DNA of 64,000 nucleotides from Eukaryota sp. TZLM1-RC. Lineage: Eukaryota > Protista > Metamonada: BaSk clade. The position numbers and the translations under genes were made by a program. The notes below the pieces were generated by a model. The model was not told the origin of the DNA, did not search any database, and saw nothing but the letters and a program-made list of their open reading frames with translations. This document shows, in pieces, positions 4,984-56,938 of the stretch. Location of the stretch: contig JAUPSS010000001.1 in NCBI GenBank assembly GCA_040285825.1, forward strand, positions 496,001 to 560,000, given 5' to 3'. Each line of letters begins with the position of its first letter. Within the stretch, counting starts at the first letter, position 1.

Positions 4984-5144
4984 ACAAAGTAAATGGAATG
5001 TGGGAAAGTGTGGGAATAGTGAAAACCTCCCAAAACCAAGTTGAGGGTTAAAAACCTCCCAGAATAGGCAACCAGAAGTCGAAAATGGGTGACAAGTGTA
5101 AAATTTGATAGATGAGCTCTTTATTCTCACTACATGTCAGACAC
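4984..5144 (+). repeat. Conserved 5' leader/left end of Fanzor element (copy 1)
   Basis: Aligns with the reverse complement of 26968..27160 up to and including the start codon, e.g. CAACCAGAAGTCGAAAATGGG(G)TGAYAAGTGTAAAATTTGATA...TACATGTYAGACAC. Confidence 0.85.
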
Positions 5145-7088
5145 CCCCTCTGTATCACGTGTATTCACTCGGTCTTGTGCACTTAACTCGCTGCTGACCC
5201 CTGCAGCGGTGCAACAAATTCGGACTGACCTTCCTGTGGTCACCGAGATTTGTCATGAAGCGTCTTTATTACTTCAATCTTTTCTTCTAAATTTTCCGTT
5301 GGCATCAAGAGGTTTAGTGGAACAGGATGTATGGTATCTGTTTATGACCGTCATCACCACTGGTTCTTTTCCAAAGCCTTCCACATCTAAAGGCCAACGC
5401 CAATTACTCCATATCTTTTACAATGGATTTCTTCCTGAATGCCCACAAGACAGGTCTCTTGTTTCTGTGTGGGAAAATTCTTTAGTGCCTTACAGAAATT
5501 CATTCCATCTTTTCCTCAATGATTGGCTGCAGTCCCAGAACTGTAATTTTATCAATAGAAAAGGGCTTTCTTCTTATCTTGCCTGTCGTGCTCGTCAATT
5601 GGCCTCCAACGTTAAGACATGTTTACCCAAAATTTGTCAATCCTGGACAAAAACTTTATTCGTGCTCATTGTAGAGCCCTGAATAAAACAAATGTCTTTG
5701 CAAATAATATTCTTTCACTTTTGCCAGATGAACTACTAGCCCAACCCGAGGAAGTAGTAGTTGATTCTGTTCTTGAATACCTCATCAATTTCAATTTGAA
5801 TAATTCAAGAGAAAGATTTTTTTTATTGAATGCATGTAGGTTTATCTTGAATCTCTTTCAAAGATTTCCTACCACTGCCTCCCTACTGTCCTCACATGAT
5901 AAAATCACTTTTTCATCAAAGGAAATTAGTGAGCTTTTTCTCTTCAATCTTAAAATTTCACAATACTTACTCACTTTCTTTTCTCATATGCATTGCTGGA
6001 AGATATTTAGAATAATACCTTTAGCTTCTCATAAAGGTTCTAAATTTATTGAGGTACCTTCACAAATTTTCCACTCTGTGAAAAAAATTTCCAATTATTG
6101 AAGGATCATCTTCCAAAACAAAGTTTATCAAAAATACATGTCTGAAACGAGTATTCAAACAATGTCCTTACCAAAAATTCAATATCAACAGAAAAGTTTG
6201 AAAAATAGATTTAACAAAATTTTATTGAAAACTAATGGTAATGAACTGCTTTTGACCTTTGAAGGTAAAAATAATGACTCAGAAAACACAGATGAGCTGG
6301 ATGAACCACCGAAAAAGAAAAGAAGATCAAAAAATGAAATGAAAAGTGACCCTGATGCCAACAAAACCAGAGAAACACAGTTGAAGGGTACTAAAAAAAT
6401 GCCCCGTCGAAGACGTAGACATCCAGTCGAAATTTTACCTGAAAGGCCCCTTATCGGCGTTGATCTTGGCCAATCAAGATTATGTGGTTACTTCTTAAAT
6501 GATAATCAATGTGGAGTTATTCCTTGTCCAACTGGCAGAAGATACGTGACAAAACCTTCACCCAGTAAACACTCTCCCAACCAATATTCCGTTCAAAATT
6601 TCAACCAATATTTGAACCATTGGAATTTGGTCAGGAGGAAAGTGTATTTGGAAAGTAATCGCCAGAAATGGAAAATAATTAAATTTGATAACCGCAGACG
6701 AAAAGAGAGACGGTTCAGAGAGAGTCTCAACAAATTTCAAAGGCTGGCTGGACATCCTGAAAAACTCTATCTTGCTGTGGGTTCTGCTAATTTCCCTTCT
6801 CATTGCCGAAAAGTCAATCGATATGGATCAGCAAGAGCTTTCAGAAAATGGTTGTGTTATCAAAAGGACGTGAAGCACTTGTCAACCAGTGAATTTAATA
6901 CAAGCAAAATGTCAAGTTGTTGCATGGCCGAGAATATTCAAGCAGGATCATGGCAGATGCGTATTTGTACTGAGTGTCAAATAGTATATGACAGAGATAT
7001 TTCCGCTGCAAAAAATATTCAAATTAAGAAGAAAGCGGAATTGTGGCCGGAAAGATACATTTGCCCAGATGCTCTGCTGAGGAGATGA
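5134..7088 (+). mobile_element. Fanzor (eukaryotic TnpB-like RNA-guided RuvC nuclease), split into three ORFs
   Basis: N-terminal CALNSLL...ICHEASLLLQSF, FRIIPL, LKTNG, RuvC-I LIGVDLG, LAVGSANF, RuvC-II STSEFNTSKMSSCC, Zn finger CTEC, RuvC-III YDRDISAAKNI. NLS-like PPKKKRR. Confidence 0.85.
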
Positions 7089-7362
7089 ATAGGGAACGTG
7101 AGCATACAGAAACAAAAACTTTTGAGACCGATCTACAAATACCTTAGTAGCATTTGGTAGATCCACTTAGATACATCAAGTCGCGAGGCTTTGTTCTGTG
7201 AATGCAGTAGGTGTATTTAAGTGAGGTAGCCCATTGATGAAGATCATGATTGTCTTTGTCAAATGATGCTACATGTCTCTTACAGCCTGTGAGTAGACAT
7301 TGAGAAAGTTGAAAATAGGAGTGAATTTCACAGGGGAATGCATGATAAGTGAAATTCACAGT
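7089..7362 (+). ncRNA. Candidate Fanzor omegaRNA scaffold / element right end
   Basis: Nested stems directly after the stop: GCATACAGAAACAAA (7102) pairs with TTTGTTCTGTGAATGC (~7205), and GATCTACAAAT with ATTTGGTAGATC. Further hairpins ATGTCT...AGACAT (7273-7300) and GTGAATTTCAC/GTGAAATTCAC (7321-7359). Confidence 0.5.
7329..7362 (+). repeat. 34-bp direct repeat, copy 1 (copy 2 at 8486..8519)
   Basis: CACAGGGGAATGCATGATAAGTGAAATTCACAGT is identical at both positions. Confidence 0.95.
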
Positions 7363-7745
7363 AAGAATATTTGAGAATAGATGATTTTCCAGTGATGATC
7401 ATTGATCAATCATCTTTTGTATGAATTAAGGCCATAAGACATTGAACTCTTCTGTACTTCCGCAAATACTGATGTACTAGAGTTTGGCCTCGACAAGAGT
7501 GACTTTTGGTAGACTCGGGTAGTTTAGTTGGCATTGAATTTTAATTAATTGGAACTCAAACTGTGAAGAACTTCCATCACAAATTTTGGAGACATTTGTT
7601 TTATAGAAAATGGTATATGACAAACTAAAATTCAAATGAGACAAATGAGGCAAATAAAATAAGTGAATTATTGCACAAATTTATACCAAATTGCAATGTT
7701 CATGACTAATGAATTCCTAAATTAACAAACACAGACAGACATCTG

Positions 7746-8485: not shown

Positions 8486-8519
8486 CACAGGGGAATGCAT
8501 GATAAGTGAAATTCACAGT
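8486..8519 (+). repeat. 34-bp direct repeat, copy 2
   Basis: Identical to 7329..7362. Confidence 0.95.
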
Positions 8520-9273
8520 TACAATACTGACCCATTTTCTTTGTTCATTGTTTATAACCTTATTAGTATTCTTTATTACTTTTGTTAATAACTTGTATTC
8601 AAACATTGCAATAGCCTAAAATATATACATATTATACAATAAATACAGTATGATAGTTTATGAAATGCTGCATTGATATGCTGATGGTTATATTCTCAGC
8701 TATAACATTGTCCTATTGGCTTAAGAAGAGGATTGAATTCACGATAGTTATTATAGAATTATACTGTTAATTGAGCAAGCATATACCAATATTTAGCGGG
8801 TACGCCACCTGTTAAGTTCATTGAGTGCTCATACATCCGATTTAAATGAATTTGATCAATTATTTGTTCAGAAAACGCCAAATTTGTTAAATTGAATTTC
8901 AAGGTCTATATCGTGACAATAACGTCCCATTAAACTGATATATCAACACGCATATGAACAACACCTAAATTTAACTATGTTTTACGAAGCAAGCAATTAT
9001 AAAATCCCAACAAGAGACAAAATTTCTTCAGCACTTATTGCAGAAACGATTACACATTTTAAAATCAATCACTGTGACCAACAGTGAAGTCAGATAAGGA
9101 AATTTTGTATGGACATGAGTGGTCACACAAAGTCTTAAAATTGAGGGAAATATTGGGCATTACACATGCTCCAGCACAGTATTGAAAAGTTTGTACAATT
9201 TAAATGCTCTCCTATATTATATTACCAAACATCTTTTAAAACAAAAATTTATTTCAAGACCTACAAAAATATT

Positions 9274-12200
9274 CTACAATTTACTAAGATATGAATCATA
9301 ACTAGCATCTGTGGCGGCCTTGATGCTGTCCAACAACTTTCCATCAGTGAGACTCAGCTTGGTGACACTTGAGCCTGACAAAGACCCCTTGAAATACTGA
9401 ATCATAGGATCAAAGTAACTATGATTCCCAACAGGACACATCAAATAATTGATACTCAATTCTTTAGACTTTGCTAGAATTGCATCAAATCTAGACTCCC
9501 AGGTACGACCACTGGGATCTTTGGGGTGATTATCACCTGTGCCACAGTTGAACCTGGAGCCATGATTGGGAGCATCACCAACAATAAATATCATACGGTG
9601 ACCCTTCGGCCAAGAGAGTTCCAGAGCTTTATCCAATCCAGTACAAATGTCTTCAGGGGCATCACCACCTCCAGCAGCTCTTACACTGCGAATTTTGCTA
9701 CTCAGAGTGGATAGATTACCAAAAGGCAGGACCTCAAAAGGTGCAGAATCACCAATGTCGCGATCTAGAGTTAACCAAACAAAGAAAACATACAAGCTAC
9801 AAATCCAAGATTAACCTTAACGGTAGAGGTGTAACCATACGAAGAAGCAGTAGAAGATAAGGATTTTTCAAGCTCTCCGCCCATTCGTATAATGTTTTCA
9901 GCAGTTTCTGCGATATAAGAACCCATACTTGCAGTAGCATCAAACACAAATACCGCGGACATGTCAGTGTTGATGTCTTGTTTCTTGATGAAATCCAAGG
10001 ATAGTCCAGTGGATGGTTTAACTGAAGGCTTTGGCTTCTTATCATAGCTTGAATAGGAGGGCGTTGACTTGGAATTAGATCTAGACTTTGAGTTGGAATC
10101 TTTAGGTTCCTCACCACCAATACCAAAAACAGAACCAATCTTACCTAAAATACCAGAAGCTGTTCCTTTAGAACCAGATAGTCTGGGCATGGGGATACCA
10201 GCAGGATCACTGTTAACTTCCCAATGGCCGTACTTCTTGTAACACCGGGGATCATTCTTGTTCTTGCACTTAGAACCGTTCATACATTTATAAGGAATGA
10301 GAGGAAGACTACCATGAGAAAATTGGAAGCGATGTTTTGGATCAACAATGTCTCTACAACGTTCCCCATGGCGACATTCTTCACGTTCCAGATGGTGGAA
10401 AAGGGCACAGTGGCTTGCATCATCCTTGTCCCTACACCCACTACCAAAGCGGCAAATGTGTACAAAATTAGAAAGGTGGGTTTGTCCAGCGGCAGTTTTG
10501 GCTTTGGAACCATCGTAGTAGTACTCACAGGTCCAAGGATTGCGACACAATGGTTTAGATTCAGTGGATTCAGAGGTGGTTGGTGTGGTTGGTGTGGTTG
10601 GTGTGGCATTCCTAGTTGAAGTAGGGGCCTTCTCCATGGTTTGATCAGCAATAGATTTCGCTGAATGTAAGTGACGCTGAGCAGCATTGACAAAAACTTC
10701 CTTAAATGAAGCATACCCGTCTCCATTCAGCTTAAAACCTATGCAAACATCCTTTGATTTGCACTTCAATTGAGCATGAACAAATTCTAATGGAGGGAAT
10801 TTGAAAGCAGTTTCAGCACCAATTCTTTCCAGCTTAATTTCCCCATTATCTCTGTTGATCACAAGCCCAAACTTTATATAAAGTTCCTTCATTCGAGAAG
10901 GGAAATACAACCGTTGATTAGCAATTTGTTGACCATCGTGGAGATTTGTTGAATTGAAAACAATGACGTTACCTTCATTAAATGAAAAACACATTCCTGA
11001 AGCCTTAGCAATGATTTGCAGATGAAAATTCGTGGAAGCATTAACTTTAAAGGCAACACGAATGGGGTAACCATTGTTGAAGACCTCACGCAACTGCAAC
11101 GAGTTGCATAAAGGTTGAGGAGTTAACACAAAGCTATAACCTTTGCTACACTGGTTAGCATCTTCACTGTTGGTGGACAAATCAGCAGCATGGTCTAAAT
11201 ACTCCTTAGAGCTTACGTCGCCATCAGTTAGAACTAAAAAACCAGGTGTTACGGCATTCAAATCATTGAGTTGTTTTTGGGCTTCAGCAGAAAGCTCTTT
11301 GAAAGTTGACTTTGGCATTAGAATATGTCGAACATAAGAAAATGGAATCATTGGAGCTAAATGGCATTCAAAAGTGTGGTGACTATCAATAGAGAAAATA
11401 GTTTCAAGGCACATTTGGCATGTTACGGTGGACACGCCAACTTTCCTCTTTTCAGCAACCATTCTGGCTAAATCCCAAGCCAACACTTCAGATGCCTTGA
11501 TACAGCCCATATTTTGAATTAAGGAATAGTAAAATCTGATACGTTCGTTAGAATGGGTCTTGGACGGTAACTTGATGTAACTTCTGCCGGCATCATCCAA
11601 ATTTCCTTGGCTATAGTATAATGTTGCAGCAGTAAGGTGAACAAAAGAGGCAGGGTGCTTTGAAAGTTCATCGGAAAAGAATACAGAGATTGGTCCATAT
11701 CTGTGGAAGGTATTCGGACCCAAGTTGGTAAAGACAGTGTGGTCTGTTTTGAGAGCCCTGTCCTTATCGTATCCAATACCAACCTCCTCAGAATTAGCCT
11801 GTTGGTTCAATGTTATGGCAGCTTGAGCAATACCAGTAGCGAGCTGATTCAACTCCTTAAGAGCCTCATTGGGAAGATTCAATAACTTTTTCGATTCTTG
11901 TTGGGCAGCAACATCTACTTCCTGCCCACTAAGCCTTGAGAATTCATTTTTAGCAGCTGTAGCAAGATAATCTGCAACAGTTGAACGATTAGAGAACTTG
12001 TGCAGTCGGTGGTGATTGCGTGCAATGGATTCTATAGTATCGGAGTTGCCTAGCTTATTTTTCATAAAATTAAGAGAGTAAAAGTTGCCATGGGCTAATG
12101 AAGATAAGAATGGTTCTACCTTGATTCTATGGGTAGGCTTAAAACCTAAAATAAACTGGGCGATGCTGGCAATATTTTCGGGAACAGACTTTGTTCCAGA

Positions 12201-15200
12201 GGGTACAACAAACTTTCCAAGTTTAATGGCATTTTCGTAAAAATTAATCTCATGATCAGCAGATAATGAAGGTGGTCTCAATGAACCAACGATTTGGAAA
12301 ATCTTGCTAGAGGGATGTGAGAACATTTGCAAATGATTTGGATCACTCTGCTCAGTGCAACCAACTCTGTGACGGCATTCGTGGCGAGGATGGGGTGCAT
12401 TGTTGTGTTGATAGAGAGCTAGATGATTGTTATCAGTAGAGGAACAATTCTTATCTGGGCAGTTCAGACGGTTCAAATGAATGAAATGCTTAATATGGTC
12501 TGGGGACTTGTCAGTGCAACGAGTACCGTGACGACAAACAAAACGTTCATAGACCATTGGACCTGAACCACCGACAAAAGGATCTTCTGCAAGACGTACA
12601 TGGTTGAAATTATTGACGTGTTCTGAGGTAAGATCAACGCAATTCTTAAAAGGACATTGAACTCGATCGTGGTTATAAAGACATTTTTTGTTTTTTTCAC
12701 GACAATTGGTACCATTGGGACAGGAAGGTCGATGATAAAACGAAGCACGGTGTTTCTCACTTAGATTCTGACAATGAGGTCCGTCCCTACACGAAGGTGC
12801 ATGTTCAAAGGCAGCATCATGTCCAGGATCCTGATGATGGTGTAAACAATTCGTGAAATATTTACAAGGCTTGGTGTGAAAGAACAGCGCTGTATGGGTT
12901 TTTGACGAACGTAGAGAACAGTCAGTTCCATTGGGACAGATTGGGAGATGAATGAATCTTTGAGCATGATCTTTGTCTTTCAAATTTGTGCATTTGTTGG
13001 GTAACTGGGGGCAAGGAAGTTTCAAAGATTTGAGGTTGGTGGCTACAAGATCAGTTTTCAAAAGCGACGCACATTGATTGAGCTGGTCAGAAAATCCACT
13101 AAATATAATTGAATCAAAAAACTTGTGAAAAATGGAAAGTACAAATGATAAAACAGTCATTGCACCGGGAATAGGGTTTCTGAAAGCTCCACAACCAAGA
13201 GGGCAAATCACTAAATGAGTAATTCCGTGTTTAATGGCAGCTAAAAAGACACAAGTCCATCTCTTGTATAGTAATTGTAAATCATCAAAATGAGCATAGT
13301 CTTCACCAAAGTTTTCAACTTCTGAGATTTCTGGCTCCTGAGGAGCAGCAGTACTTATAATGGTAACTCTTTGTGGTTTTTCAAGCAATTGACATCCAGT
13401 AGCTTCAGTTGTTTTGAAAATTTCCACATTTTCGGTAACTACAACATCAATTTTAGCTGTTTTCCATGGATATGCTACCCTTTGGCCAGAAACTACCTGT
13501 CCACCATACTGTTCAGGATCCAAAGCAGCACCTAGAGTTGTTCTTCTGAAAAGTGATTCTTCCTGAGCACTGGCACCCGTGAGATAACCACCACCAGGAT
13601 GTTCCTCATTGGCCATATTGAGGACACCAACAACTCTGTTCCTGTTGGGTTTGATAGAAATAGCGCATTCAAGACAGTCTTTGGGCATGGGCTGGACTGA
13701 GGAGGTCTTTTTCTGTTCCAGAGGCGAAAAACTGTGGTTAATCACATCATCAAAGGAGTAGACATGGTTAATCAAATTAGGAACGTGAAGTTTAACCTCG
13801 GTTTTGTTTTTTGTGTTGTTATCAAAGATGGCATATTTGTTGCCTCCCACAGCACTAATTGTATGAGCTTGGACAATACATAGCGCCAGTCTATACGCAC
13901 CATTAGAACGTCGTCTTATGTTGTTGACATCAAACTTAGAAAGCACTGTCTCCATGAAACTTCCATACTTGTTGATCAATGTATTATAGCTTTTAGCAAG
14001 TGTAAGATGAGGTGATTCTTCTTTCAACAGCATTGGTAACGGAAAGCCAAAATGAAGACGATTAACAAAAGCAACAATTGATTCAACTTCCGAGTCTTCC
14101 CTTAACTTAAAAGAGGACTTCTCATTGATTGGACATCTATTGTGTTCAGTGAGTAAAATTAAACGACGGCCGAAAGTAACCAACCAGCATCTCTTTTCCG
14201 TAAGATCAAATGTTGTAATAAGAGCAGCTTTTGCAAGTTCCAAATCAGTTTGTGGTACGATAGCGAGCTCCCAAGCATGCTTAATCTTAAGATCAGATGC
14301 AGCACCTCGATGGATGACCACGATAAAGTCATGGATTTGCTTAGATGCGGAATTAAGTGATTGAGAGAGATTCGTTTCGGATGACTTGGAAAACACATCA
14401 AATTTGGCAATTGATATTCCCTTTTTGTTCTCATTTACCAATTCAATGACACAATTAGGAAGTTTGGATTGGAGTGACTTTTGTATAGTTGAGGCGTTCT
14501 TCCCACTAGAATAAATGGCTGTCAACTCAATCTTTTCATGATAAACGTTGATATGCATCTCGCTTGCACTAAGCCAAATGTTATTATCTCCAAGAATCAG
14601 ATCTAGAGCACGGACTGGTTCTACTTTTCTACAATTAAATGTCACCAGAAAGAATTGTGGGGAGATTTCTTGAACAGAAAAAGTACCTCCATCCTGAAGA
14701 ATCATTTTGGCAACTTCTTCTACACGATGCAGAGGAAAGGGCTTTTCAGGTTGGAAATACAAAGTGCAGGAAAAACTTTCATACTGCGCAACTTGTCTTT
14801 GAGGTAGTAGATTGCGGAAAACATGGACTTTGATGTTGGTAAACTCTTCAATGCAAGGTCTGATCTGAGGTTCTGCCCAAATACGACGCAGCGATTCATC
14901 TTGCATATCCTTCTCTTGGAGGAAAAGATAAGCTTGTGTTTCTTGATAGGAGGTCATATCTCTATCTATGGGGAAAAGATTGTTTTGTGAAGGATCTGGC
15001 TCCGGTTCTGAAGATGGTTCAGGATGGACAGAAGGGAAAGGGCATGGCATAGGATCATCATAGTGACTACTTTCGGTTTCGGAACTACTACTAGTATCGT
15101 GTACAACATTGTGTGGATTGACGTTAATTAATGAGGGGAACAAACTAGGGCCTGGTTCAAACGCTACATCTTCGGGAGGCTCAAACGGAGAGCTTTCAGC

Positions 15201-15380
15201 AGGGTCGGATAAATCCAATACAACAGTCTTGTGACTTGGATTGAAAAAATCGGGGAATGGTGCCTTGACCATCAATATCCTATTCTTGTTCAATTGGTGA
15301 GGAGGAGAATTATAAGCAAAAATTTGGTGAAGTTTACACATTTCAATGATTGTTACATTTGCACTTCTCCACACAAACAT
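9274..15380 (-). CDS. Multidomain protein: bacterial-type PARG (DUF2263-like) + 13 PBZ-like zinc fingers + putative ADP-ribosyltransferase-like domain + vWA; one 29-nt intron (9765..9793)
   Basis: VLNMANEEHPGGGYLTGASAQEESLFRRT and PLGCGAFRNP (PARG). Repeated C-x5-C-x6/7-H-x5-H fingers. MIDAS-type FDATASM. Splicing GTATGT...TTAACTCTAG restores VAYRDIGD and joins the 9274..9795 ORF (GGGDAPED, IVGDAPNHG). The true start may be MVKAPFP at 15272. Confidence 0.85.
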
Positions 15381-16227
15381 AGCATAATTGTGTTGGTAAT
15401 TATATCATCCATGTACAATTTTGCAACTAATTCAAAGAAGAAAAGAGACTGTATAAATAGTCAATCACTGTTTCCCTAGGGATAAGAAAGGCTCTTGTTT
15501 CTATTTTGAATTGAATCGTGTTATTGATGATATTTGTCTCATCGGTATGATACTCTTCATTAAAAATCAACTACACTTAACAAAATAGCCGTGTGCTTCC
15601 AAAGTATTTGTTTTCAGTTTTTTTACTTTGTTGTTTATACATAAACCTTGTACAAAAAACAGAAATAAGTCGTTGCTATATTTGAGGTAAAAAATAAACA
15701 AATGAATAGAAATGAATAAAATCACCACATGTTTGGATTATGGCGACCATGGATTGCGAGGAAATTAGATCATAATTTTTCTGAATCAATGTGAAATAAC
15801 AAACGATGATTAGATCATTGAAAATGATTTGAGATAGAGTTGGACAAAACTCGACTGAGAAGGTCCAGTTGCAGTTAGTTAGATGGAATATGGAATATTT
15901 TCAGATAACGTGTAATCAATGTGCTTATTCGAGATCAATGCACTTATTTAAAATATGCTTAAAATCTGATTTCCTTTAATGAATGTTCATTCTTTTAAAT
16001 CATGGATGAAAAATTCCAAGAATACTAAACTGTAGTAAAAGGCTATAACTTAAGACAAATATGGAGGCCTATCGCCACCACTATCCACTCAAAAATACTC
16101 TACAATACATAATGCTTTGATGGATGAAAATTTATGTTTCTGGAAAATTAATCAAAGACAGGATTCTTTTGGAACCATCCATAACCTTTGGCCACGTATA
16201 CTTTCTTCATTGTTTTAAACATCTTTT

Positions 16228-19200
16228 ATGGTAAAGTCTTTTCCAGGATACCATTCTTGTCATGAAGTTGCTGCTGGAGCTTTTGGAGTAGTATACAAAG
16301 CTGTTTCTTGCAAGGATCAAAAACTTTATGCTATTAAACAGTTTTTCCTTCCTGCTGATAACCCTGAAGCATTGATGCGTGAGATTGCACCCATGAAACT
16401 CGACCATCCAAATATCTGTCGTGTTATTCGCCATTTTCGTCATTTTGATGGTCAGCATACCAGCGATTGCTTGGTGATGCCGTATTATGAGACGAATCTC
16501 ACCAATTTGATATATCATTCACATATTCGTGAAGATAACTCTCCAGGAGAACCTTTAGAAAATGACCTTGCATGGAAAATATTTTGGCAATTAGTAGAAG
16601 GTATACATTTTTTACATCAAAAAGAAATATGCCATAGGGATCTAAAGCCGGAGAATGTACTGCTGGATGAGCACCTCAATGTAGTGATTTGTGATTTTGG
16701 TTTGGCTAAACCTTTTGACAACATCAACGGCAACCCTTTTAATACATTAGCCACTCCAGCCTACTATCCCCCAGAACTAATTGCATCCGGTCAATATGGC
16801 CCAGCTGCTGACTACTTTGCATTAGGGGTGATTTTCTACGAGATGTTGGTAGGAAAAATGCCTTATGATCCCCTTCTCCCAGATCGTACACTTGAGCCAG
16901 GTGTGCTATCCAAGGTAAATGACCCAAAAGCAAAACAAATCATCGAGAACCTCTTGAATGTAAGACATGAACCAAGATCTTATTCTTTTGATAATCTAGT
17001 CAGGTGGTTACGTCATCGCTTCGATTCTTCATTCCCAACATCATCAGTTTATGAAGTCAACAATGATGATAACGGTCATGTAGATTTGATCGGTTCGGCA
17101 CGTGGTAGTCTTGCCACAGAGGAACCTAGTGCTCCTCCAATTCAAGAAACAACAAATTCTTATACAAACGACAGTCATGGAAGAGGCAACTCTTTTGTTA
17201 CTAAGCCGGAAGGATTGTACCAAATTAGTAAGCTCGACAGTATTCCCAAACACACTCTTCAAGTATCACAACCTTCTTCAGTCACCAAAGAACAAACAAT
17301 CTCAATACACTTTGTTGGTGAGGATGACGTTGAAAGAGTAACTTCTGTTCTTCCATCAATGTTTAGTTCAGTGCAACAAACTGGCAAGTCTGATTATCGT
17401 AATTTCTCTTGTTTGGAATTTCTCGTTTATTACACTTCAAATGAACATTCTGTCACTCTTAAACAACTCGTTAGGAATGGACTGGCCAGTAGTGTTGATT
17501 GTGGCCTGCTTAATTACCCTGTTATTAAAGGTAAAGCTGATCCGTTTCCTGAACACGTTTTTGAGGTTGTTCTTCATCCCTATCTTCGTTATTCGTCAAT
17601 TATTCAAGCAATTAATGTTTCAACAGTTGGTAAAAAGCACAGATTTTATGTTTTAAATGAGCGGAGGTTGCTGATCATGACTTCTAACTATGGTGATCTA
17701 TCCCCAGGGTCTAGCTTTTCCATAAGATTTAACGGACAGAAATGCACTTTTTGCATAGTTTATATGAAAGAGTATAACCCTCTGTCGCCTATTCCAGTAC
17801 TGTTTAATGACGAAACAGCCTCTGTTGATTTGGTGAGGGATACTTTCAGTTGTGTTGATGGGTCATACAACCCTTCACTCAATTTGGAATTATTATCATT
17901 ATATAGTGATCGCAGATACTTTTCCCTAAAACATTGTTTATTCATTAACTGTGTCTCCCAAGCCCACACCTTCTATTGTATTGAAAAAGGAAGGTACTTT
18001 ACTGGTGATGGAGCTAGCAACAGTTTGGAAGTTCAATCAATCACAAATTCTACTTACAGCTTTCCTCAATTAGTGCAATCTGTCTCTGGAACTCAGTTAC
18101 CACAATTGTATTTCAACGACAACACTTTTTGCCTCCAAGAACAGGATTGTTTGGAATGCATTACCCAATGGATGCCCTTGAACGACAAAAAAGTTGGGGT
18201 TTTGTGTATGGGAAGCCCGGACTCTCCTGGAGGTGAGTATTCAAGTGGATCCAATTCCCAAGAATCTTCTCTATTCCGCAGGACTACCTTGATGGCTGGT
18301 TTCGCAGGAGAACAGTTTGGTTCTAGAATCCATTCTTCCAGTCAACGTGTCCCTTATCCATGGGATTCTAACAACATTGATGTTGTGGTTACTGAAGGGG
18401 TAGAAGTCATCAAGAGTACAGAGGTTGATGGCTTAAGACCATTACCTTCCCCTTTTGAAATTGTTGTTTTAACCTCTTCTGCCCCTCAACATCCAGCTAT
18501 TAGAAAACACTTTAAATTTGGTCAAGATTTTGCTAAATTGGATGACTTAGAATTACTCTACAAGAGATGGACCTCTGTCTTTTTAGCTGCCATTAAGCAC
18601 GGAATTACTCATTTGGTGATTTGCCCCCTTGGTTGTGGATTTCTCAAAAATCCTATTCAAGGTAGCATGGAAGCATTGAAAAGTTTATTAATGGTTTTCT
18701 CGCCCTATTTCAGAAGTATTTGTTTCTCAGCTTTTGAAAACTTTTCACAGTTTTCTAATTTATTAAAACCAGAGTTGCCCTTACCTTCAAGACCTCCACA
18801 AATGTTCCACGAACTATTCATCCTCCCTTTTTTCACTCCAGGGTTAGGGTTATCTAGAGTTCTTCCTTGTTGTAAAAAGGGTTCAAAATGCGGAAAGTTC
18901 AAGAATATTCTTTCTCATCAAGCGTTTTTCTCTCATCAAGCTAGTACTGATTTGGTTCTCAATTGCCCTAATCCAATCAAGTCTATTGAACTTCCCACTC
19001 GGCGTCTTCTTAGGTCCCGCTACCAGATCTCGTTTCACTCAAATCCTTTCTGTTCCTTGGAAATTGCATTTTCCTTTGAAAGGGGTGAAAATTATTCCGG
19101 TTTTTGTGTCAAATTTGAATCTGGGCATGTCTCGGTATTCAATTCACCAACTTCCTCCATTGAAGATGGTCCTGTAATCAGCCAACAACTATGTGATTCC

Positions 19201-19404
19201 CTCTGTACATCTTCACTTGCACGGTTTGTTATGTTATTTTACCAAATTGATGGTGACTATTTTGTGGAAGTCCAAGTGTCCGACAATGGTTGTCTTCTTG
19301 CACCACTTTCATTGTCTCCACAAGAAAACGAAATGACCTTCCTACATGCCAGAATGACTGAACATAATGCCACTTTATTGGGATTTAAATATGGGTGCTT
19401 ATAG
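16228..19404 (+). CDS. Ser/Thr protein kinase fused to a PARG-like macrodomain with altered catalytic motif and one PBZ-like finger
   Basis: YAIK, HRDLKPEN, CDFG, PPE, DYFALG. Then GVLCMGSPDSPGGEYSSGSNSQESSLFRRT, PLGCG and CKKGSKCGKFKNILSHQAFFSH. Confidence 0.9.
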   Translation: MVKSFPGYHSCHEVAAGAFGVVYKAVSCKDQKLYAIKQFFLPADNPEALMREIAPMKLDHPNICRVIRHFRHFDGQHTSDCLVMPYYETNLTNLIYHSHIREDNSPGEPLENDLAWKIFWQLVEGIHFLHQKEICHRDLKPENVLLDEHLNVVICDFGLAKPFDNINGNPFNTLATPAYYPPELIASGQYGPAADYFALGVIFYEMLVGKMPYDPLLPDRTLEPGVLSKVNDPKAKQIIENLLNVRHEPRSYSFDNLVRWLRHRFDSSFPTSSVYEVNNDDNGHVDLIGSARGSLATEEPSAPPIQETTNSYTNDSHGRGNSFVTKPEGLYQISKLDSIPKHTLQVSQPSSVTKEQTISIHFVGEDDVERVTSVLPSMFSSVQQTGKSDYRNFSCLEFLVYYTSNEHSVTLKQLVRNGLASSVDCGLLNYPVIKGKADPFPEHVFEVVLHPYLRYSSIIQAINVSTVGKKHRFYVLNERRLLIMTSNYGDLSPGSSFSIRFNGQKCTFCIVYMKEYNPLSPIPVLFNDETASVDLVRDTFSCVDGSYNPSLNLELLSLYSDRRYFSLKHCLFINCVSQAHTFYCIEKGRYFTGDGASNSLEVQSITNSTYSFPQLVQSVSGTQLPQLYFNDNTFCLQEQDCLECITQWMPLNDKKVGVLCMGSPDSPGGEYSSGSNSQESSLFRRTTLMAGFAGEQFGSRIHSSSQRVPYPWDSNNIDVVVTEGVEVIKSTEVDGLRPLPSPFEIVVLTSSAPQHPAIRKHFKFGQDFAKLDDLELLYKRWTSVFLAAIKHGITHLVICPLGCGFLKNPIQGSMEALKSLLMVFSPYFRSICFSAFENFSQFSNLLKPELPLPSRPPQMFHELFILPFFTPGLGLSRVLPCCKKGSKCGKFKNILSHQAFFSHQASTDLVLNCPNPIKSIELPTRRLLRSRYQISFHSNPFCSLEIAFSFERGENYSGFCVKFESGHVSVFNSPTSSIEDGPVISQQLCDSLCTSSLARFVMLFYQIDGDYFVEVQVSDNGCLLAPLSLSPQENEMTFLHARMTEHNATLLGFKYGCL

Positions 19405-19807: not shown

Positions 19808-21406
19808 ATGACAGACGGAGACCCTACATCCAACAGTTCGCAAATCTCTGAAGCAGAAAAGCAACAGAAGAGGCGTGAACAACACCGCCTAAGTGCCCGC
19901 AATTACCGTGCCCGCAAAAAAGCTGAGGTGACCTCTATGCAAGCCCGTATGCGCGAAATGGCATCTCAGAATGAGATGCTTCTGCGAGAAATTCAGATAC
20001 TAAGAGCTCGTCTTGCAAACGGTGAGTCACTTTCGACAGGCCGTGGTGGAAGTCCTGTTGCTGATGGTCAAAGGCATACCAGTTCTTGTCAACCTGACCA
20101 CCAGACTGAAAGTTATATCGCCCAAAGAACTGTATCCAACACTCGCAAATATGCTGTTCTACTTTCACAAATTCGCCAAGGAATCAGTAATCCTGGAACT
20201 CCTGACGAACACATAATCCATTTGTTAGATAAGGCATATTGCCAGATTTTAGGAATTTGCACATTCACCACTGATCAATGTACTTCCTGCCCATACCAAG
20301 ATACCCAAAGTTGTTTATGCTCGGATAGTAAACCAGCCTTTAATTTAATAAGTGGGCAGCCAGCAAATCATTTGTACACATCTTTCTATCCATGTGTCTC
20401 TCAACTGCTCCCTCAGATGGGGTACGGTTCAGACATGTCTACGCAACCCTCTCCTGCTAGTCATGAATCCATGTTCAAGAGTCCTGCATTTGAGCCATGT
20501 ATCAATAACTGTGCCCAGTGTCCCAATATTACATGTTCTTCTCGTTCCGTTCCTCCTGTTCAACCTGCGGTCATCTATCCTGGTAACCTGTATCCTTGTG
20601 TTAACAACTGCTCTATCTGCAAGAATGTCCACTGCACTCACAGGTCCCAACCATTAAGCTATCACCAAGGTAACGTGTTTCCTTGCATCAATGATTGTCA
20701 AAATTGTAAGAACCTGAACTGCCCGAATAGATCATTACCTCCCAGAATTCCATCCTCAGTAGTCCACAATGCAGTAACGTCCACTAACTCGAGAGTAACT
20801 GTTTCCTCCGATGATTCAGATGAACGTTCTGCAAGCGAACGTGAAGAGAAACTCAGTTGTCAAGCAATCTCTGTTTCCTTTTGTCAGCCTTTCCTACTGG
20901 GCAAGATGTTGTACGTACTCTACTCTGGTCCAGAAGATGAATATGACAAGGCTGCCATGGATAAGCAAAGAGTTGTTTTTGAACGCTGGTTACGGGAACA
21001 ATTGGTTACAAGATGTGGAAGCAACCTTGAAGAAGCTATTGCTAATGTCATGAATGAATTGACTAATTATGAGGTTCAACTCAAGGCTTTACTTCGCGAA
21101 AAGAAAGATTTAATAGAGTCTCTATGGTCCACTGCCTCGCCTTATGCTGAACAATGTTTGGCTCCATTTGCTGTTCCTTTCACCAGTAGTCAATGTACAT
21201 TGTCGCCTGGGCCTGATCTCACTGCATTTTCAGAAGCCAGTTCTCAATTGAGCAATATTATTGCCAAGCAACATAAACTTTTGTACAGAATTTTGAAGGT
21301 CACCAGACGGTATTCACCAAAGGTGGAAGCTGCTCTGTTTCTTGGTAGACATCCCTTCAATTCAGAAGAGGAGATGCTGGATGTTACTCTTCGAATGATG
21401 CTTTAG
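19808..21406 (+). CDS. bZIP transcription factor with three Cys-rich repeats
   Basis: Basic region RREQHRLSARNYRARKK plus zipper M..M..L..I/L..L. Repeats PCINNCAQCPNITCSSRS, PCVNNCSICKNVHCTHRS and PCINDCQNCKNLNCPNRS. Confidence 0.85.
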   Translation: MTDGDPTSNSSQISEAEKQQKRREQHRLSARNYRARKKAEVTSMQARMREMASQNEMLLREIQILRARLANGESLSTGRGGSPVADGQRHTSSCQPDHQTESYIAQRTVSNTRKYAVLLSQIRQGISNPGTPDEHIIHLLDKAYCQILGICTFTTDQCTSCPYQDTQSCLCSDSKPAFNLISGQPANHLYTSFYPCVSQLLPQMGYGSDMSTQPSPASHESMFKSPAFEPCINNCAQCPNITCSSRSVPPVQPAVIYPGNLYPCVNNCSICKNVHCTHRSQPLSYHQGNVFPCINDCQNCKNLNCPNRSLPPRIPSSVVHNAVTSTNSRVTVSSDDSDERSASEREEKLSCQAISVSFCQPFLLGKMLYVLYSGPEDEYDKAAMDKQRVVFERWLREQLVTRCGSNLEEAIANVMNELTNYEVQLKALLREKKDLIESLWSTASPYAEQCLAPFAVPFTSSQCTLSPGPDLTAFSEASSQLSNIIAKQHKLLYRILKVTRRYSPKVEAALFLGRHPFNSEEEMLDVTLRMML

Positions 21407-25879: not shown

Positions 25880-26978
25880 TGAAAAAAGCGCAGTCTCATT
25901 TCATCAAAAATACGGATTACTTGTTGTAGATTTTCAGCCAGAAATTCTGTATTATCATTTCGCCACAATTTAGTAGTTTTGATTTGTTCTAACAGTTGAG
26001 CAAATTCTTTTTTTCTTTCAATGGAAACTGTAGTTAATACCAACCTTTGTTTACAATTTTTTATGAAAAAGTCAAGTTCTACTGTTGAAATGAAATTGTG
26101 AATTTCATGTTGAAACAGTTAAGAAAATACATTTTCAATGCTATTTATTCTTCCTCTAACAATATACAAAGACTGAATTACCTTTCTTAAATCTATAGTC
26201 ATAAAAGGTCCTAATCCAGTTTCGCTAAACCATTCTTTAAACCACAGAGGGCTATGAGAAATATAATCGTTTTAATTGGAAAACTTTTTCAATTTGCAAC
26301 AAATCACAGCGTTGAACAAAACAAGGAAGAAAAATTCGTCTGTGTTGTAGCCAATAAGTAACCCAGGCTTAATCTTAATCAATAAGTCAATAACTGAATT
26401 AATCATATCCTTCTCTGATGAACATAAGTGAATAGAACAGTCCTCTGATTGAGGAATCACTTTTGTGGAGAAGATGTGTGACTCTTCCGAATCTTCATAT
26501 ATAAATGCCAGAGTAATCATAATGAGAGAATTTTCGTGAGGATTTGACAGTAGTTCCTCTCTGTATGTTTCATGTTCTTCTTCAATTTCAGGAATTTCGG
26601 CATCAGGTTCTTGAAACAAAACAGTGGGTTCTTCAAAGGAAAAGTTTAGACTGTTAGGTGACTTTTGCGATTTTGAAATAATATTCACATCAAGACATTG
26701 GGTGTTGGTAATGACTCTTCTCAACGCCAAAAAACAATGTAGCGTATGAGTAGCTTGAGAGACATTTTCAATAGTGCATAATTGTCTTTTTTTCTATTCA
26801 GGAGTGAGTCTAGATCCAGTGTGAGAATGACGTTTGAAGATAGTTTTAGAAGATGTAGAAAGCAGCGAAGTAACACGTTCTCTGTCTTCTTCTGACCTAA
26901 GAAGAGGTACAGAGTATGAAACGGTGGGTGGGTCAATACCCAGGTTCAGCGACACAATGGGCGGAGAGTGTCTAACAT
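25880..26978 (-). pseudogene. Family-B DNA polymerase 3'-5' exonuclease-like domain, decayed, upstream of and apparently fused to the Fanzor
   Basis: IHLCSSEKDMINSVIDLLIKIKPGLLIGYNTDEFF (ExoII, GYNxxxFD-like), followed by GPFMTIDLRKVI. Starts at the ATG (26978) of the shared leader. Confidence 0.65.
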
Positions 26979-27160
26979 GTAATAAGAATTATGAGCTTCT
27001 TTATCAAATTTTACACTTATCACCCCATTTTCGACTTCTGGTTGTATTGATCTGGTAGGTTTTTAACCCTCGACTTGGTTCTGGGAGTTTTTTAACCCTC
27101 GACTTGGTTCTGGGAGTTTTTGACACTTTTCTCACACTTTTCTCATTCCTTTTCTATTGT
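26968..27160 (-). repeat. Conserved 5' leader/left end (copy 2) with a tandem 30-bp unit
   Basis: Homologous to 4984..5144. TTTTAACCCTCGACTTGGTTCTGGGAGTTT occurs twice (27061-27120). Confidence 0.85.
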
Positions 27161-37555: not shown

Positions 37556-38049
37556 TGAGTTGAAAAATATCATTTGCCTTCTTCACCGTCTTCACTAAAA
37601 CCGTCTTCGCAGTCTTCACTAAAATATATATTGTTTTCATAACACTGTCAAATTGTGATCAATGAATGCGATCAATGTTAGAATGGCTGGAACATGTATT
37701 GGAATAGCAATCAAGTACATTTTCTCTTACAATGTTTAATGATTTGCTTTCTCTATTGCAGCTCTTGTCATTATTCCATCTTAATTCTTTACTCTAAGCA
37801 CTGTAAGAAATTTCAATCATGTTTATTGTGAAAATTCTATTGTTTTTGGAGGACGAGGAAAAACTTACGGAAGAACACGTGTTTCTCAGTAATTACACTG
37901 ATGATGAAACCTCTAAAGCAAACAGTGATTGAAAAGATATCGTCAATGTCTGGAGAAAACTGTCATTGAAAAATTTTGGTTCTGATGACAGAGGTGATAT
38001 TTACTGCGATTGGATTGAAAACTCCTAAGTTATTGTTGATTTTGTCTCT

Positions 38050-52087: not shown

Positions 52088-52990
52088 ATGAATCTTGACC
52101 ACCTTGCTCAGCAACTTCCCGACTATAAGGATTTCGAACGTATTGGAAAGGGGGGGTTTGGCGAAGTTTACTGAGCGAAACGAAAAGAAACCGGCCAGAT
52201 ATATGCAATACAAGTAATGTATAGCTGCCCAAAAGAGATGGGCATGTGGGAAAGGGATGTTGTTCCAATGACCCTTAACCATCCCTATATCTGTCCTACA
52301 CTAGATACCCATGCGCGGCAGAACAGCTACTGTGTGGTGATGCCTCTGTACAACTGCAACCTGGCAAAACTCATATATAGAGTCTCAGAACGAACTAATC
52401 TCAACCCAGGCAAGAAACTTGACCCTGTTTTAGCATGGAAGATTTTTCATCAGCTCGTAGAAAGTATCAATTACCTGCATGGCCGCGGTTTTGCACACAG
52501 AGACGTTAAGCCAGAAAATGTGCTCATCGATGACAATAACAATGCTGTGCTCAGTGATTTTTTGTTTGCAAAACGTTTTACAAGTTTATCCTCTACTCCT
52601 TTCAGAACACTTGCAACTCCAGCATATCATGCTCCTGAGATAGTTGAAGCTATGGATGTATTAGAAGACCAACCCAATGTGGAATATGGGCCAGCTGTGG
52701 ATTATTTCTCTCTGGGTGTCATATTTTATGAAATGATGGTTGGAAGGCTTCCTTATGATCTTGAAGGAAAAAGAACTCTTTCACCCGAAAGAACAGAAAC
52801 GATTTCTAAAATTGACCCATTAGCTCGGTGCTTTATTGAAGGCCTCATGTCCAAAGATCAAGATGCTCGGATTAAAATGTTTAAGCAAATCGTGGATGAA
52901 ATGCGAAATTCAACAGACGATGGTGGTTTCAAATCTTGCTTCTGTTTTCGGAGAAATGTACAAAATAGAACAGTCAATCGAAATTGTTGA
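52088..52990 (+). pseudogene. Truncated kinase paralogue of the kinase-PARG genes
   Basis: Closely similar to the N-terminus of 53789..56938, including the upstream region. Premature TGA in GEVY*AK, catalytic K replaced by Q (YAIQ), DFG reads DFL, no PARG part. Confidence 0.85.
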
Positions 52991-53788: not shown

Positions 53789-56700
53789 ATGAATCATGAC
53801 CACTTTGCTCAACAACTTCCTGACTATGAGGATTTCAAACTTATTGGACAGGGGTCGTTTGGCACAGTGTACCGAGCGAAAAGTAAAGAAACTAACCAGG
53901 TGTGTGCTATAAAGATTGTGGCCAATCGCCCAGACGAGATGGACAGATGGGAGAAAGATGTTGAACCAATGACCCTTAACCATCCCTCGATCTGTAAAGT
54001 GCTAGATACCTATGTATGGAAGGAGAGCTACTGTGTTGTGATGCCTCTGTACAACTCCAATCTAACAAAACTCATATATGGAGTCCCAGAACGTACTAAT
54101 CTCAACCCAGGCACAAAAATTGACCCTATTTTAGCATGGAAGATGTTTCATCAGCTCGTAGAAGGTATCAATTACATGCATGGTCGCGGTTTTGCCCATA
54201 GAGACCTTAAGCCGGAAAATGTACTTCTAGATAATGATAACAACGCAGTGCTGTGTGACTTTGGTCTTTCCAAACGTTTTACAACTTTATCTGCTGCGCA
54301 GTTCCGAACACTTGCAACTCCAGCTTATCATGCTCCCGAGATACTCAAGGCTTTGAATACATCTAGAAACCAACCTACTGTGGAATATGGACCAGCTGTG
54401 GATTATTTTTCTCTGGGTGTCATATTTTATGAAATGATGGTTGGACAACTTCCTTATCATGTTGACGGTCATAGAACTCTCTCGCCCGAAAGGGCAGAAT
54501 TGATTTGTAAAATTGATCGTGTGGCAGGGCGTTATATTGAAGGCCTTATGTCTAATGATCACGATACACGAACCAAAATGTTCAATCAAATTGTGAAGGA
54601 AATGCGGAGTTCATTAGATGATGTTGGTTCCAACCCTTCGCCATATCATTTTTACAAAAAACAACTCACCGAACAGGGTTGTAGTCCTCTTTCTGTTATT
54701 TCGCATAAGAAATATGGCGGCCACACTGGAAAATTAACAGAGAATTTAATGCATATATCGACTGTCCCAGTGATTAAACATTCACCAAGGATCACACCTA
54801 ATAGCAGGGAAAAGATGGTCACCAAACAACAAACAATCTCAATACACTTTGTTGATGAGGATGACGTTGAAAGAGTAACTTCTGTTCTACAATTAATGTT
54901 TAATTCAGTGCAACAAACTGGTAAGTCTGATTTTCGTAATTTCTCTTGTTTGGAATTTCTCGTTAATTACACTTCAAATGAACATTCTGCCACTCTTGAT
55001 CAACTCGTTAGGAATGGAATGGCCAGTAGTGTTGATTGTAGCTTGCTTAATTACCCTTTTATTAAAGGTAAAGCTGATCCGTTTCCTGAATACGTTTTTG
55101 AGGTTGTTCTCCATCCCTATCTTCGCTATTCGTCAATTATTCAAGCAATTAATGTTTCAAGAGTTGGTAAAAAGCACAGGTTTTATCTTTTAAATGAGCG
55201 GAGGTTGCTGATCATGACTTCTAACTATGGTGATCAATCCACAGGGTCCAGCTTTTCCATTAGATTAAACGGACAGAAAATTAAGCTTACTATTATGTAC
55301 AGACATCAGTATAACCCTCTGTCGCCTATTCCAGTACTGTTTAATGACGAAGAAGCCTCTGTTGATTTGGTGAGGGATACTTTCAGTTGTGTTGATGGGT
55401 TATACGACCCTTCACTCAACTTGGAATTATTATCATTATATAGTGATCGTAGATACTTTTCCCTAAAACATTGTTTGTTCATTAACTGTGTCTCCCAAGC
55501 ACACACCTTCTATTGTATTGAAAAAGGAAGGTACTTTACTAGTGATGGAGATAGAAAACATTTGAAACTTCAATCAATAAGAAATTCTACTTACAGCTTT
55601 CCTCAATTAGTGCAATCTGTCTCTGGAACTCAGTTACCACAATTGCATTTCAATGACAACACTTTTTGCCTCCAAGAACAGGATTGTTTGGAATGTATTA
55701 CCCAATGGATGCCCTTGAACGACAAAAAAGTTGGGGTTTTGTGTATGGGAAGCCCGGACTCTCCTGGAGGTGAGTATTTAAGTGGATCCAATTCCCAAGA
55801 ATCTTCTCTATTCCGAAGGACTACCTTGATGGCTGGCTTCGCAGGAGAAAACTGTCCGTCTAGAATCCATTCTTCCAATCAGAGTGTCCCTTATCCATGG
55901 GATTCTAACAACATTGATGTTGTGGTTACTGAAGGGGTAGAAGTCATCAAGAGTACAGAGGTTGATGGCTTAAGACCATTACCTTCCCCTTTTGAAATTG
56001 TTGTTTTAACCTCTTCTGCCCCTAAACATCCAGCAATTAGAAAACATTTTAAATTTGGTCAAGATTTTGCTAAATTGGATGATTTAGAATTACTTTACAA
56101 GAGATGGACCTCTGTCTTTTTAGCTGCCATTAAACACGGAATTACTCATTTGGTGATTTGCCCTCTTGGTTGTGGAGTTCTCAAAAATCCTATTCAAGGT
56201 AGCATGGAAGCATTGAAAAGTTTACTCATGGTTTTCTCGCCTTATTTCAGAAGTATTTGTTTCTCAGCTTTTGAAAACTTTTCAGAGTTTTCTAGTTTAT
56301 TAAAACCAGAGTTGCCATTACCTTCAAGACCTCCACAAATGTTCCACGAACTTTTTCTCCTTCCTTTTTTCACTCCAGGGTTAGGGTTATCTAGAATTCT
56401 TCCTTGTTGTAAAAAGGGTTCAAAATGTGGAAAGTTCAAGAATATTCTTTCTCACCAAGCGTTTTTCTCTCATCAATCTAGTACTGATTTGGTTTTAGAT
56501 TCTGCTGATGAACCAATTTCTTTTGAACTATCGGCATACAAGGTATTGAAGTCACCTTTCAGGGTAACTTTCCATTCTGCTCCCTTTTCTACCATTGATG
56601 TTGCCGTTTCTTTTGAAGGCAGGGGTAATTTCTCTGGTTTTTGTGTTTGTTTCAGAGCTGGCAACGTTTTAGTCTATAATTGTCCTATTCCAACTGATAA

Positions 56701-56938
56701 CACAGCTCCTTGTTCCATACAACAACTCTGTAGAGATGGAGCTGACAATTCTATTCCAGTTGAACACTCTATATCTCTCTCAAAAAGTGGGAATGATTAT
56801 TATTTAGAGGTAGAACTAATTGGTCATTACAATGCTAGAGCAATGCTTAACTTATCTCCACAGACTGAACAGATTTGCAAACTACACTTGAGTTCGATTG
56901 ATTCTGCTGCTGTTTTAGGCTTAAAGTATAGTTCATGA
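53789..56938 (+). CDS. Ser/Thr kinase-PARG-like macrodomain fusion (paralogue of 16228..19404)
   Basis: GQGSFG, CAIK, HRDLKPEN, CDFG, APE. Then PGGEYLSGSNSQESSLFRRT, PLGCG and a PBZ-like finger. Confidence 0.9.
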   Translation: MNHDHFAQQLPDYEDFKLIGQGSFGTVYRAKSKETNQVCAIKIVANRPDEMDRWEKDVEPMTLNHPSICKVLDTYVWKESYCVVMPLYNSNLTKLIYGVPERTNLNPGTKIDPILAWKMFHQLVEGINYMHGRGFAHRDLKPENVLLDNDNNAVLCDFGLSKRFTTLSAAQFRTLATPAYHAPEILKALNTSRNQPTVEYGPAVDYFSLGVIFYEMMVGQLPYHVDGHRTLSPERAELICKIDRVAGRYIEGLMSNDHDTRTKMFNQIVKEMRSSLDDVGSNPSPYHFYKKQLTEQGCSPLSVISHKKYGGHTGKLTENLMHISTVPVIKHSPRITPNSREKMVTKQQTISIHFVDEDDVERVTSVLQLMFNSVQQTGKSDFRNFSCLEFLVNYTSNEHSATLDQLVRNGMASSVDCSLLNYPFIKGKADPFPEYVFEVVLHPYLRYSSIIQAINVSRVGKKHRFYLLNERRLLIMTSNYGDQSTGSSFSIRLNGQKIKLTIMYRHQYNPLSPIPVLFNDEEASVDLVRDTFSCVDGLYDPSLNLELLSLYSDRRYFSLKHCLFINCVSQAHTFYCIEKGRYFTSDGDRKHLKLQSIRNSTYSFPQLVQSVSGTQLPQLHFNDNTFCLQEQDCLECITQWMPLNDKKVGVLCMGSPDSPGGEYLSGSNSQESSLFRRTTLMAGFAGENCPSRIHSSNQSVPYPWDSNNIDVVVTEGVEVIKSTEVDGLRPLPSPFEIVVLTSSAPKHPAIRKHFKFGQDFAKLDDLELLYKRWTSVFLAAIKHGITHLVICPLGCGVLKNPIQGSMEALKSLLMVFSPYFRSICFSAFENFSEFSSLLKPELPLPSRPPQMFHELFLLPFFTPGLGLSRILPCCKKGSKCGKFKNILSHQAFFSHQSSTDLVLDSADEPISFELSAYKVLKSPFRVTFHSAPFSTIDVAVSFEGRGNFSGFCVCFRAGNVLVYNCPIPTDNTAPCSIQQLCRDGADNSIPVEHSISLSKSGNDYYLEVELIGHYNARAMLNLSPQTEQICKLHLSSIDSAAVLGLKYSS

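Follow-up and report, generated by a model that had tools for sequence, protein, structure and literature searches.

The stretch of DNA analysed here (JAUPSS010000001.1:496001-560000, the 64,000 nucleotides that we call the window) comes from Eukaryota sp. TZLM1-RC, which in our reading is Skoliomonas litria, a metamonad that lives free and anaerobically as a soda-lake flagellate. It carries two genes, K1 and K2, in which an intact-looking Ser/Thr kinase is fused to a microbial-type poly(ADP-ribose) glycohydrolase (PARG) domain with a replaced catalytic residue, and a further such gene, K3, is located 50 kb outside the window. This kinase-dead-PARG architecture is real, conserved and apparently undescribed. 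We rate as evenly balanced the view that K1-K3 are soluble Ser/Thr kinases whose PARG domain was turned from an eraser of ADP-ribose into a reader of it, within a family-wide write/erase/read system.

Structure of the kinase-PARG fusion genes

K1 is transcribed divergently from a minus-strand gene, here called gene A, and encodes a protein of 1,058 aa; it is intronless and has no membrane segment. Its parts are as follows.

16228..19404 (+): K1, comprising kinase, alpha/beta module, predicted dead microbial-type PARG, one CCHH finger and a concanavalin A (ConA)/galectin-like beta-sandwich
16249..17013 (+): Ser/Thr kinase domain, with Lys at 16336-16338, HRDLKPEN at 16633-16656 and DFG at 16693-16701
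17287..17772 (+): alpha/beta module, from a predicted model
17941..18777 (+): pseudo-PARG, with GGEY at 18229-18240, QESS at 18259-18270 and GCGFL at 18631-18645
18868..18942 (+): single PBZ-like CCHH finger, with a ratio of nonsynonymous to synonymous change (omega) of about 0.14
18946..19401 (+): beta-sandwich tail, modelled as a ConA/galectin/GH32-C-like fold (Z about 11)

A preliminary description of this DNA had found the K, HRD and DFG kinase motifs intact in K1 and K2, and they are: the beta3 Lys, HRDxKxxN, DFG and the helix F Asp are present in all three K kinases, and the alphaC Glu column of our alignment holds Glu in K1 and K3 and Asp in K2. The Pfam Pkinase score is 154-156 bits in K1 and K2. 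K1-K3 look like intact Ser/Thr kinases and are predicted to be active. Among PDB sequences PKR (94.5 bits) and CDKL1 (93.8 bits) tie at the top for the K1 kinase, and an identity as an eIF2-alpha kinase was not assigned.

The PARG domain is recognized by Pfam family PF10021 at 42.7 bits in K1 and 47.0 bits in K2, above the gathering score of 23.5 bits. In a model of K1 residues 340-1058 (pLDDT, the predicted local distance difference test score, 73; finger region poorly modelled) the top structural matches of this domain are 3SIJ, 3SIG and 5ZDA; the best PDB match is 3SIJ, the E115A mutant of Thermomonospora curvata PARG (TcPARG), with E 2e-11, TM 0.74 by target and Z 18.2. The first unit of the alpha/beta module appears in the model to have the beta-alpha-beta-beta-alpha-beta order of ferredoxin/RRM-like folds; the module has no database match, and an ESM Atlas search with it came back blank. 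The strict finger spacing C-x(4-6)-C-x(5-9)-H-x5-H occurs once in each K gene and 11 times in gene A. Directly behind K1 lies a gene for a bZIP protein with Cys-rich repeats (window 19808-21406, +).

Predicted loss of catalysis and retention of pocket residues

The substitution of GGE..QES for the GGG..QEE motif, previously reported for the kinase fusions, holds for K1 and K2 and extends to K3; gene A retains GGG..QEE. The second Glu of QEE had been named as the catalytic acid, and this agrees with the literature, in which TcPARG Glu115 is the catalytic acid, equivalent to human Glu756 (PMC3519477). The K proteins have Ser in the Glu115 column, and the third Gly, the Asn that precedes the motif (now Cys) and the loop Phe (now Leu) are gone as well. 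In Arabidopsis PARG1 (AtPARG1), E273G (the last Glu) and G264L (the third Gly) each abolish activity (PMC4287526). Because K is changed at both of these positions, hydrolysis is predicted to be lost, and the K PARG domain is almost certainly catalytically dead, as the preliminary description had supposed.

The changes are not spread evenly over the domain. Thirty positions are constant across 12 QEE proteins; K differs at nine of them, seven of which lie in the catalytic loop or at the phosphate-loop tip, and both of these changed loops border the distal ribose. K retains the DCL Asp, the Gln, the first Glu and G-C-G. The first Glu is needed for binding in TcPARG, where its loss lowers the affinity for ADP-ribose (PMC3519477). 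The diphosphate-loop patch G[AV][FY], which strains the distal ribose (PMC7050489), is GAF in gene A, GFL in K1 and GVL in K2 and K3. ADP-ribose readers that lack the activating residues at the distal ribose bind that ribose relaxed (PMC10789625), and the residue changes seen in K fit this described eraser-to-reader pattern (PMC10789625, PMC7050489).

Selection and gene conversion

The K PARG domain is kept by purifying selection. Pooled over the three sequences K1-K3 by a simple counting method, omega is 0.39 for the PARG domain (p 0.0006), 0.14 for the finger (p 0.001) and 0.52 for the module (p 0.017); it is 0.24 for the K2/K3 kinases and well below 1 for the tail. The PARG domains of K and A are near synonymous saturation, with a proportion of synonymous differences (pS) of 0.67-0.69, and at the codon of the lost Glu K and A differ at all three bases; thus, the loss of this Glu is not recent decay.

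The three K genes are mosaics. K1 shares with K2 and K3 a core that is 94% nt identical (window 17281-18957 versus 54818-56494), flanked by variable ends (44-46% aa identity in the kinase, 34-35% in the beta tail). Among the active members of the family (described below), that is, genes A, B, C, D and E as well as the coiled-coil copies, the catalytic cores are near-identical (91-98% nt) and the flanks are deeply diverged or saturated, which points to gene conversion, a concerted evolution limited to the catalytic core. K takes no part in this apart from one patch. Two tracts lie in the window.

13097-13632 (-): gene A core shared with B and C, 96-98% identical
18514..18658 (+): conversion patch between K1 and the active PARGs, 86-89% nt identical, with a near-identical core at 18541-18639

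The patch in K is about 100-145 bp long, and identity drops at the phosphate-loop Ala-Phe. In K2, 31 of 36 codons are identical within the patch, as against 23 of 54 in the flank (p 3e-5). This one tract suggests that selection holds K dead despite the presence of active donors.

Gene A and the family in the same genome

Gene A combines a predicted eraser with a candidate writer of ADP-ribose. Its features are these.

9274..15380 (-): gene A (P9112_013126), 2,025 aa: module, PARG with QEE, fingers, ADP-ribosyltransferase (ART)-like domain, beta-sandwich, fingers, vWA
13044..13898 (-): PARG domain, with GGGY at 13584-13595, QEES at 13554-13565 and GCGAF at 13182-13196
12306..13013 (-): first CCHH array, eight fingers by the strict pattern, nine by eye
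11151..12203 (-): ART-like domain, with invariant His near 12129-12131 and Glu at 11367-11369; absent from the K genes
10671..11150 (-): beta domain, weakly homologous to the K tail
10215..10544 (-): second CCHH array, three fingers by the strict pattern, four by eye
9277..9968 (-): vWA domain, DATASM motif at 9924-9947
9765..9793 (-): 29-nt GT-AG intron inside the vWA domain

The open frame 15380-9771 (-) runs on through this intron to 9274. PF10021 scores 63.3 bits in gene A, and there are about 13 CCHH fingers altogether. The His on the first strand and the Glu on a late strand of the ART-like domain are invariant in 10 sequences from three species. The top five structural matches of its model are all ART-fold proteins (Z 8.4 for SopF, 7.9 for Tpt1 and 7.1, 6.8 and 6.5 for DarT); the best Foldseek E is 0.03 and pLDDT is 67, and since the structural match is moderate we call the domain ART-like only. 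The preliminary description missed the ART-like domain of gene A along with its finger array and vWA domain, and also two further active-site changes in K. That description also gave A and K1 a homologous block reaching from the segment before the PARG to the beta-rich tail: K1 442-972 does align with A 367-926 (32% identical, E 2e-73), and the homology of the beta tails is real but weak, K1 scoring 12.8 bits against the family profile (best shuffle 6.7) and K2 and K3 staying at shuffle level. The architecture of gene A, vWA included, recurs in two sister species, GEM-RC1 and RCL.

The K genes all have full open frames of 1,045-1,058 codons, and K2 is preceded in the window by a broken relative.

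53789..56938 (+): K2, second kinase-pseudo-PARG gene, QESS at 55796-55807
52088..52990 (+): K0, broken kinase-only duplicate before K2, with a stop at codon 29, Gln for the beta3 Lys and DFL for DFG

Other members join a kinase to a PARG that still reads QEE (where a frame is broken, its pieces were read separately or X was inserted; P0009 is a gene model taken from the database itself). On the same contig, gene B (2,219 codons) has a kinase with HRD and DYD, a QEE PARG, fingers, an ART-like domain and a beta domain, and gene C (L002 10001-16680) has a pseudokinase (HMN), a QEE PARG and an ART-like domain with a frameshift near 14900. Gene E, on another contig, has HRD, DFG and QEE with one frameshift and one stop. 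Ten further QEE copies on the same contig have fingers and no ART; the full-length ones open with a coiled coil. In trees the K kinases group with those of B, C and E in a single clade at 99-100% support, and the K genes lack most of the fingers, the whole ART-like domain and the vWA domain. The simplest history would thus make the K genes reduced relatives of a kinase-PARG-finger-ART gene, derived by internal deletion and active-site change. A strict reciprocity, with dead kinases beside live PARGs and live kinases beside dead ones, does not hold cleanly: C has HMN, but B has HRD with DYD and E combines HRD and DFG with QEE, and both C and E are broken.

Kinase-only and kinase-module members of the K kinase family occur on other contigs (P0034, P0038, P0035). 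K3 is followed by a ThiF/UBA gene, and a DEAD/helicase gene with a faint match to double-stranded RNA-binding domains lies between E and a further PARG copy (L011 16532-20007).

Loss of the same Glu in other species

Word searches with the active PARG reached GEM-RC1, RCL and Kipferlia as well as unnamed proteins in publicly available sequencing runs, and those with the K block found it in this genome only; a search for RNA runs found none, and three DNA runs from one sample gave scattered short contigs only. No other protein with both a kinase and a PARG was among the best 150 of the full K1 protein search, whose cut-off of 124 bits can let distant or split fusions escape.

Two of its matches led on to kinase-preceded PARGs. 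In GEM-RC1 a RING-type finger and a tyrosine kinase-like (TKL-like) kinase stand before the PARG in two segmental copies, the first with QEE and an ART, the second with QEC, ending after about three fingers and having a decayed ART. The RCL kinase, which has HRD and DFG, continues past a single slip in an A tract into a QEQ PARG that ends before the ART. Each of these dead copies is about 93% identical to an active sister, and the Glu losses are therefore independent of K and of each other. No loss of this Glu was found in kinase-free or ART-bearing copies among those examined. Each dead copy is changed at two of the 30 invariant positions and this Glu is hit in both, for which the chance, computed by hand and post hoc, is about (2/30) squared = 0.004; 2/30 also matches the overall divergence, as neutral decay would give, so the repetition is to be read with caution. 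On the branch of the dead GEM-RC1 domain omega is 0.31 (p 0.002), and it is 0.74 for the module of that copy.

The fused kinases of the three species are dissimilar (BLAST 66-96 bits between species, 163-208 within the family). A single origin for them is not favoured, with one clade still allowed (p-AU, approximately unbiased test, 0.22). It is conceivable, though we would put it forward only tentatively, that dead-PARG-gated kinases evolved three times, once per species, each time out of a different kinase family. They would be the output arm of a defence system complete in itself, made up of ART, PARG and finger parts, and in Skoliomonas would form an ADP-ribose-to-phosphorylation relay.

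The duplication of the kinase-PARG gene in GEM-RC1 also took in a Macro-domain gene and a ThiF gene (L006 3793-6046, L010 5267-7267). A Kipferlia bialata protein (P0021) has a coiled coil, a QEE PARG and CCHH fingers, like the coiled-coil copies of S. litria, and because of this shared layout the PARG-finger cassette may predate Skoliomonas.

Other features of the loci

Every family locus contains pieces that we read as resembling the end of a non-long-terminal-repeat (non-LTR) retroelement and that may drive rearrangement; they have no Pfam match.

Window 36738-38202, 45753-45854 and 63196-63633; L001 7206-9459; L003; L011: retroelement-like pieces

A Fanzor/TnpB-like gene spread over three frames lies at window 5134-7088 (+), its last piece matching Cas12f1-like_TNB at 30.8 bits. 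A 41-bp repeat (7329-7369 and 8486-8526) flanks a DnaJ gene, and window 5022-5144 is repeated, inverted, at 26968-27092.

A proposed mechanism and its alternatives

A kinase-module-PARG-fingers-ART-beta gene would have lost its ART and most of its fingers, and residues near the distal ribose would have been replaced. Known enzymology predicts that the resulting PARG would not hydrolyse; its pocket may still bind a terminal ADP-ribose unit on protein or nucleic acid, and binding could localise or recruit the kinase or de-repress it in cis, as PAR does for ALC1. The signal would be written by ART-like domains of the family (those of A, B, D and others, not of A alone) or by an invader's ART, and erased or reset by the many QEE copies. 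Bacterial-type PARGs reverse RNA ADP-ribosylation made by toxins (PMC11833690); given this finding and the expansion, mosaicism and turnover of the family, a defence role is suggested, and the pathway may be one of defence or stress. We put the chances that K serves as an ADP-ribose sensor at about half.

Several observations weigh against an ADP-ribose-reading kinase. The exchange of Gly for Glu in the Gly loop of K may block the pocket, and the trees do not settle whether A or B/C/E was the donor of K (p-AU 0.18 and 0.31). Broken copies are abundant in the family (C, E, K0). In the assemblies of GEM-RC1 and RCL a frameshift interrupts each locus, either inside the kinase or PARG or at the joint of the two (GEMRC1_012414, GEMRC1_012540 and RCL1_008593), the GEM-RC1 kinase frameshift being common to both copies, and these loci may be pseudogenes; a phosphate-loop Gly-to-Asp change in the RCL copy argues against binding there. 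The fold match of the ART-like domain is moderate (Z 8.4). The K finger gives no match to Pfam zf-CCHH at E up to 1, and it lacks the aromatic residue that follows the first Cys in APLF.

The best-placed alternative, which we find doubtful, is that the dead PARG binds no ADP-ribose and is kept as a scaffold, a dimerisation surface or a decoy, for instance one that baits an inhibitor acting on the active PARGs. All that purifying selection shows is that the fold is important, the new Glu together with four other loop changes could occlude the site, and the RCL Gly-to-Asp change points the same way; Arabidopsis PARG2 (AtPARG2) is a retained inactive PARG with no binding role shown in PMC4287526. 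The pattern of retention speaks for the reader instead: the domain still has its adenine-side Asp, Gln, first Glu and G-C-G though only half of it is identical to A, and the adjoining CCHH finger is strongly conserved.

The preliminary description had instead proposed that A and K1 are a dedicated sensor/helper pair, co-transcribed from one bidirectional promoter, in which A writes and erases and K1 reads. The two genes do diverge, across a gap first given as about 850 bp and measured as follows.

15381..16227: divergent intergenic region, 847 bp, without similarity to the upstream DNA of any paralogue

Gene A does have writer-like and eraser domains, and the RCL kinase-dead-PARG gene also stands head-to-head, about 2 kb apart, with a kinase-finger-ART gene.

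L012 2081-5215 (-): RCL partner gene, a kinase joined to fingers, ART-like and beta domains, no PARG; ART deletion and frameshifts

However, the linkage is not conserved, an outcome that the preliminary description had itself named as a refutation: only one of the three K genes has a divergent PARG gene, K2 being preceded by the broken kinase duplicate and K3 by a retroelement-like piece, and no kinase gene adjoins D or GEMRC1_011238, both of which are A-type. Divergent gaps measure -22 to 1,868 bp across the sampled loci (median 349), so that 847 bp is ordinary, and in a family that forms a local cluster neighbours are expected. The RCL pair, with its near-identical kinases and damaged partner ART, looks like an inverted duplication. 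No promoter element shared among the family genes was found; upstream DNA is common only to K0 and K2, and B and K3 share a dispersed repeat. A dedicated A-K1 pair is thus unlikely, and gene A is one plausible writer among several.

It is more improbable still that K is a re-tuned hydrolase, in which the new Glu of GGE substitutes for the lost catalytic Glu and acts on another linkage. All three K genes do have a new carboxylate in the catalytic loop where the old one was lost, but the ribose-straining aromatic is lost too, a third-Gly change kills AtPARG1, and the GEM-RC1 and RCL copies lose the Glu and gain none. Nor do we give much credence to the K genes as chimeric by-products of a recombining, retroelement-rich cluster, in which the kinase alone matters and the PARG is slowly decaying baggage: mosaic genes (kinases about 44% and tails 35% identical between K1 and K2 around a 94% nt core), broken paralogues and retroelement-like pieces in every locus would fit, but there are three full frames of 1,045-1,058 codons, omega is well below 1 in PARG, finger and tail, and the K1 PARG is predicted to fold with confidence.

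If K binds ADP-ribose and responds to it, the reader kinase would directly link two modification systems, as a natural eraser-to-reader conversion whose residues are known beforehand, so that testing it costs little. A PARG domain that naturally traps its substrate could also be used as a probe for ADP-ribose, and the recurrent loss of this one Glu in copies that follow a kinase offers a natural experiment on the origin of pseudoenzyme sensors. If binding fails, K is a lineage-specific pseudoenzyme of modest importance.

Comparison with known systems

A and K match the microbial-type PARGs (DUF2263/PF10021; Thermomonospora curvata 3SIG/3SIJ, Deinococcus DRB0099) in sequence and fold. Gene A has the full motif in a 2,025-aa multidomain protein, whereas in K, where the domain is joined to a kinase, the catalytic Glu, third Gly, Asn and loop Phe are all missing. 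The model of the middle domain of A ranks SopF, Tpt1 and DarT first among DarT and the SopF/OspC/Tpt1-like ARTs and, as in DarT/DarG, a putative writer is linked to an eraser; unlike those systems the domain shows <12% identity, has no Pfam match and joins putative writer and eraser in one eukaryotic chain.

RPS4/RRS1 is a head-to-head sensor/helper pair of nucleotide-binding leucine-rich repeat (NLR) genes. A and K1 resemble it as divergent genes, one of which has a dead enzyme-like domain, but a Pfam scan found no NLR domains and their linkage is not conserved. GCN2 is an active kinase regulated in cis by a dead domain resembling histidyl-tRNA synthetase (HisRS-like) that still binds its ligand; the logic proposed for K would be the same, with a different ligand and domain. 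A kinase that ADP-ribose gates directly by way of a dead PARG is not known to us, and none was found in the literature within a limited library.

In Arabidopsis PARG2 the third Gly is replaced and the protein is inactive, beside an active PARG1 (PMC4287526); unlike K, it is of the canonical PARG class, retains QEE and has no kinase. The inactive macrodomain of ALC1 recruits and de-represses its enzyme upon PAR binding (PMC10789625). As in ALC1/CHD1L, an inactive macrodomain stands in K in one chain with an ATP-using enzyme, and K may work by analogy, though the macrodomain of ALC1 is of another class and its enzyme is a remodeller rather than a kinase. K belongs to neither the ALC1 nor the GCN2 family, though it would operate in a similar way.

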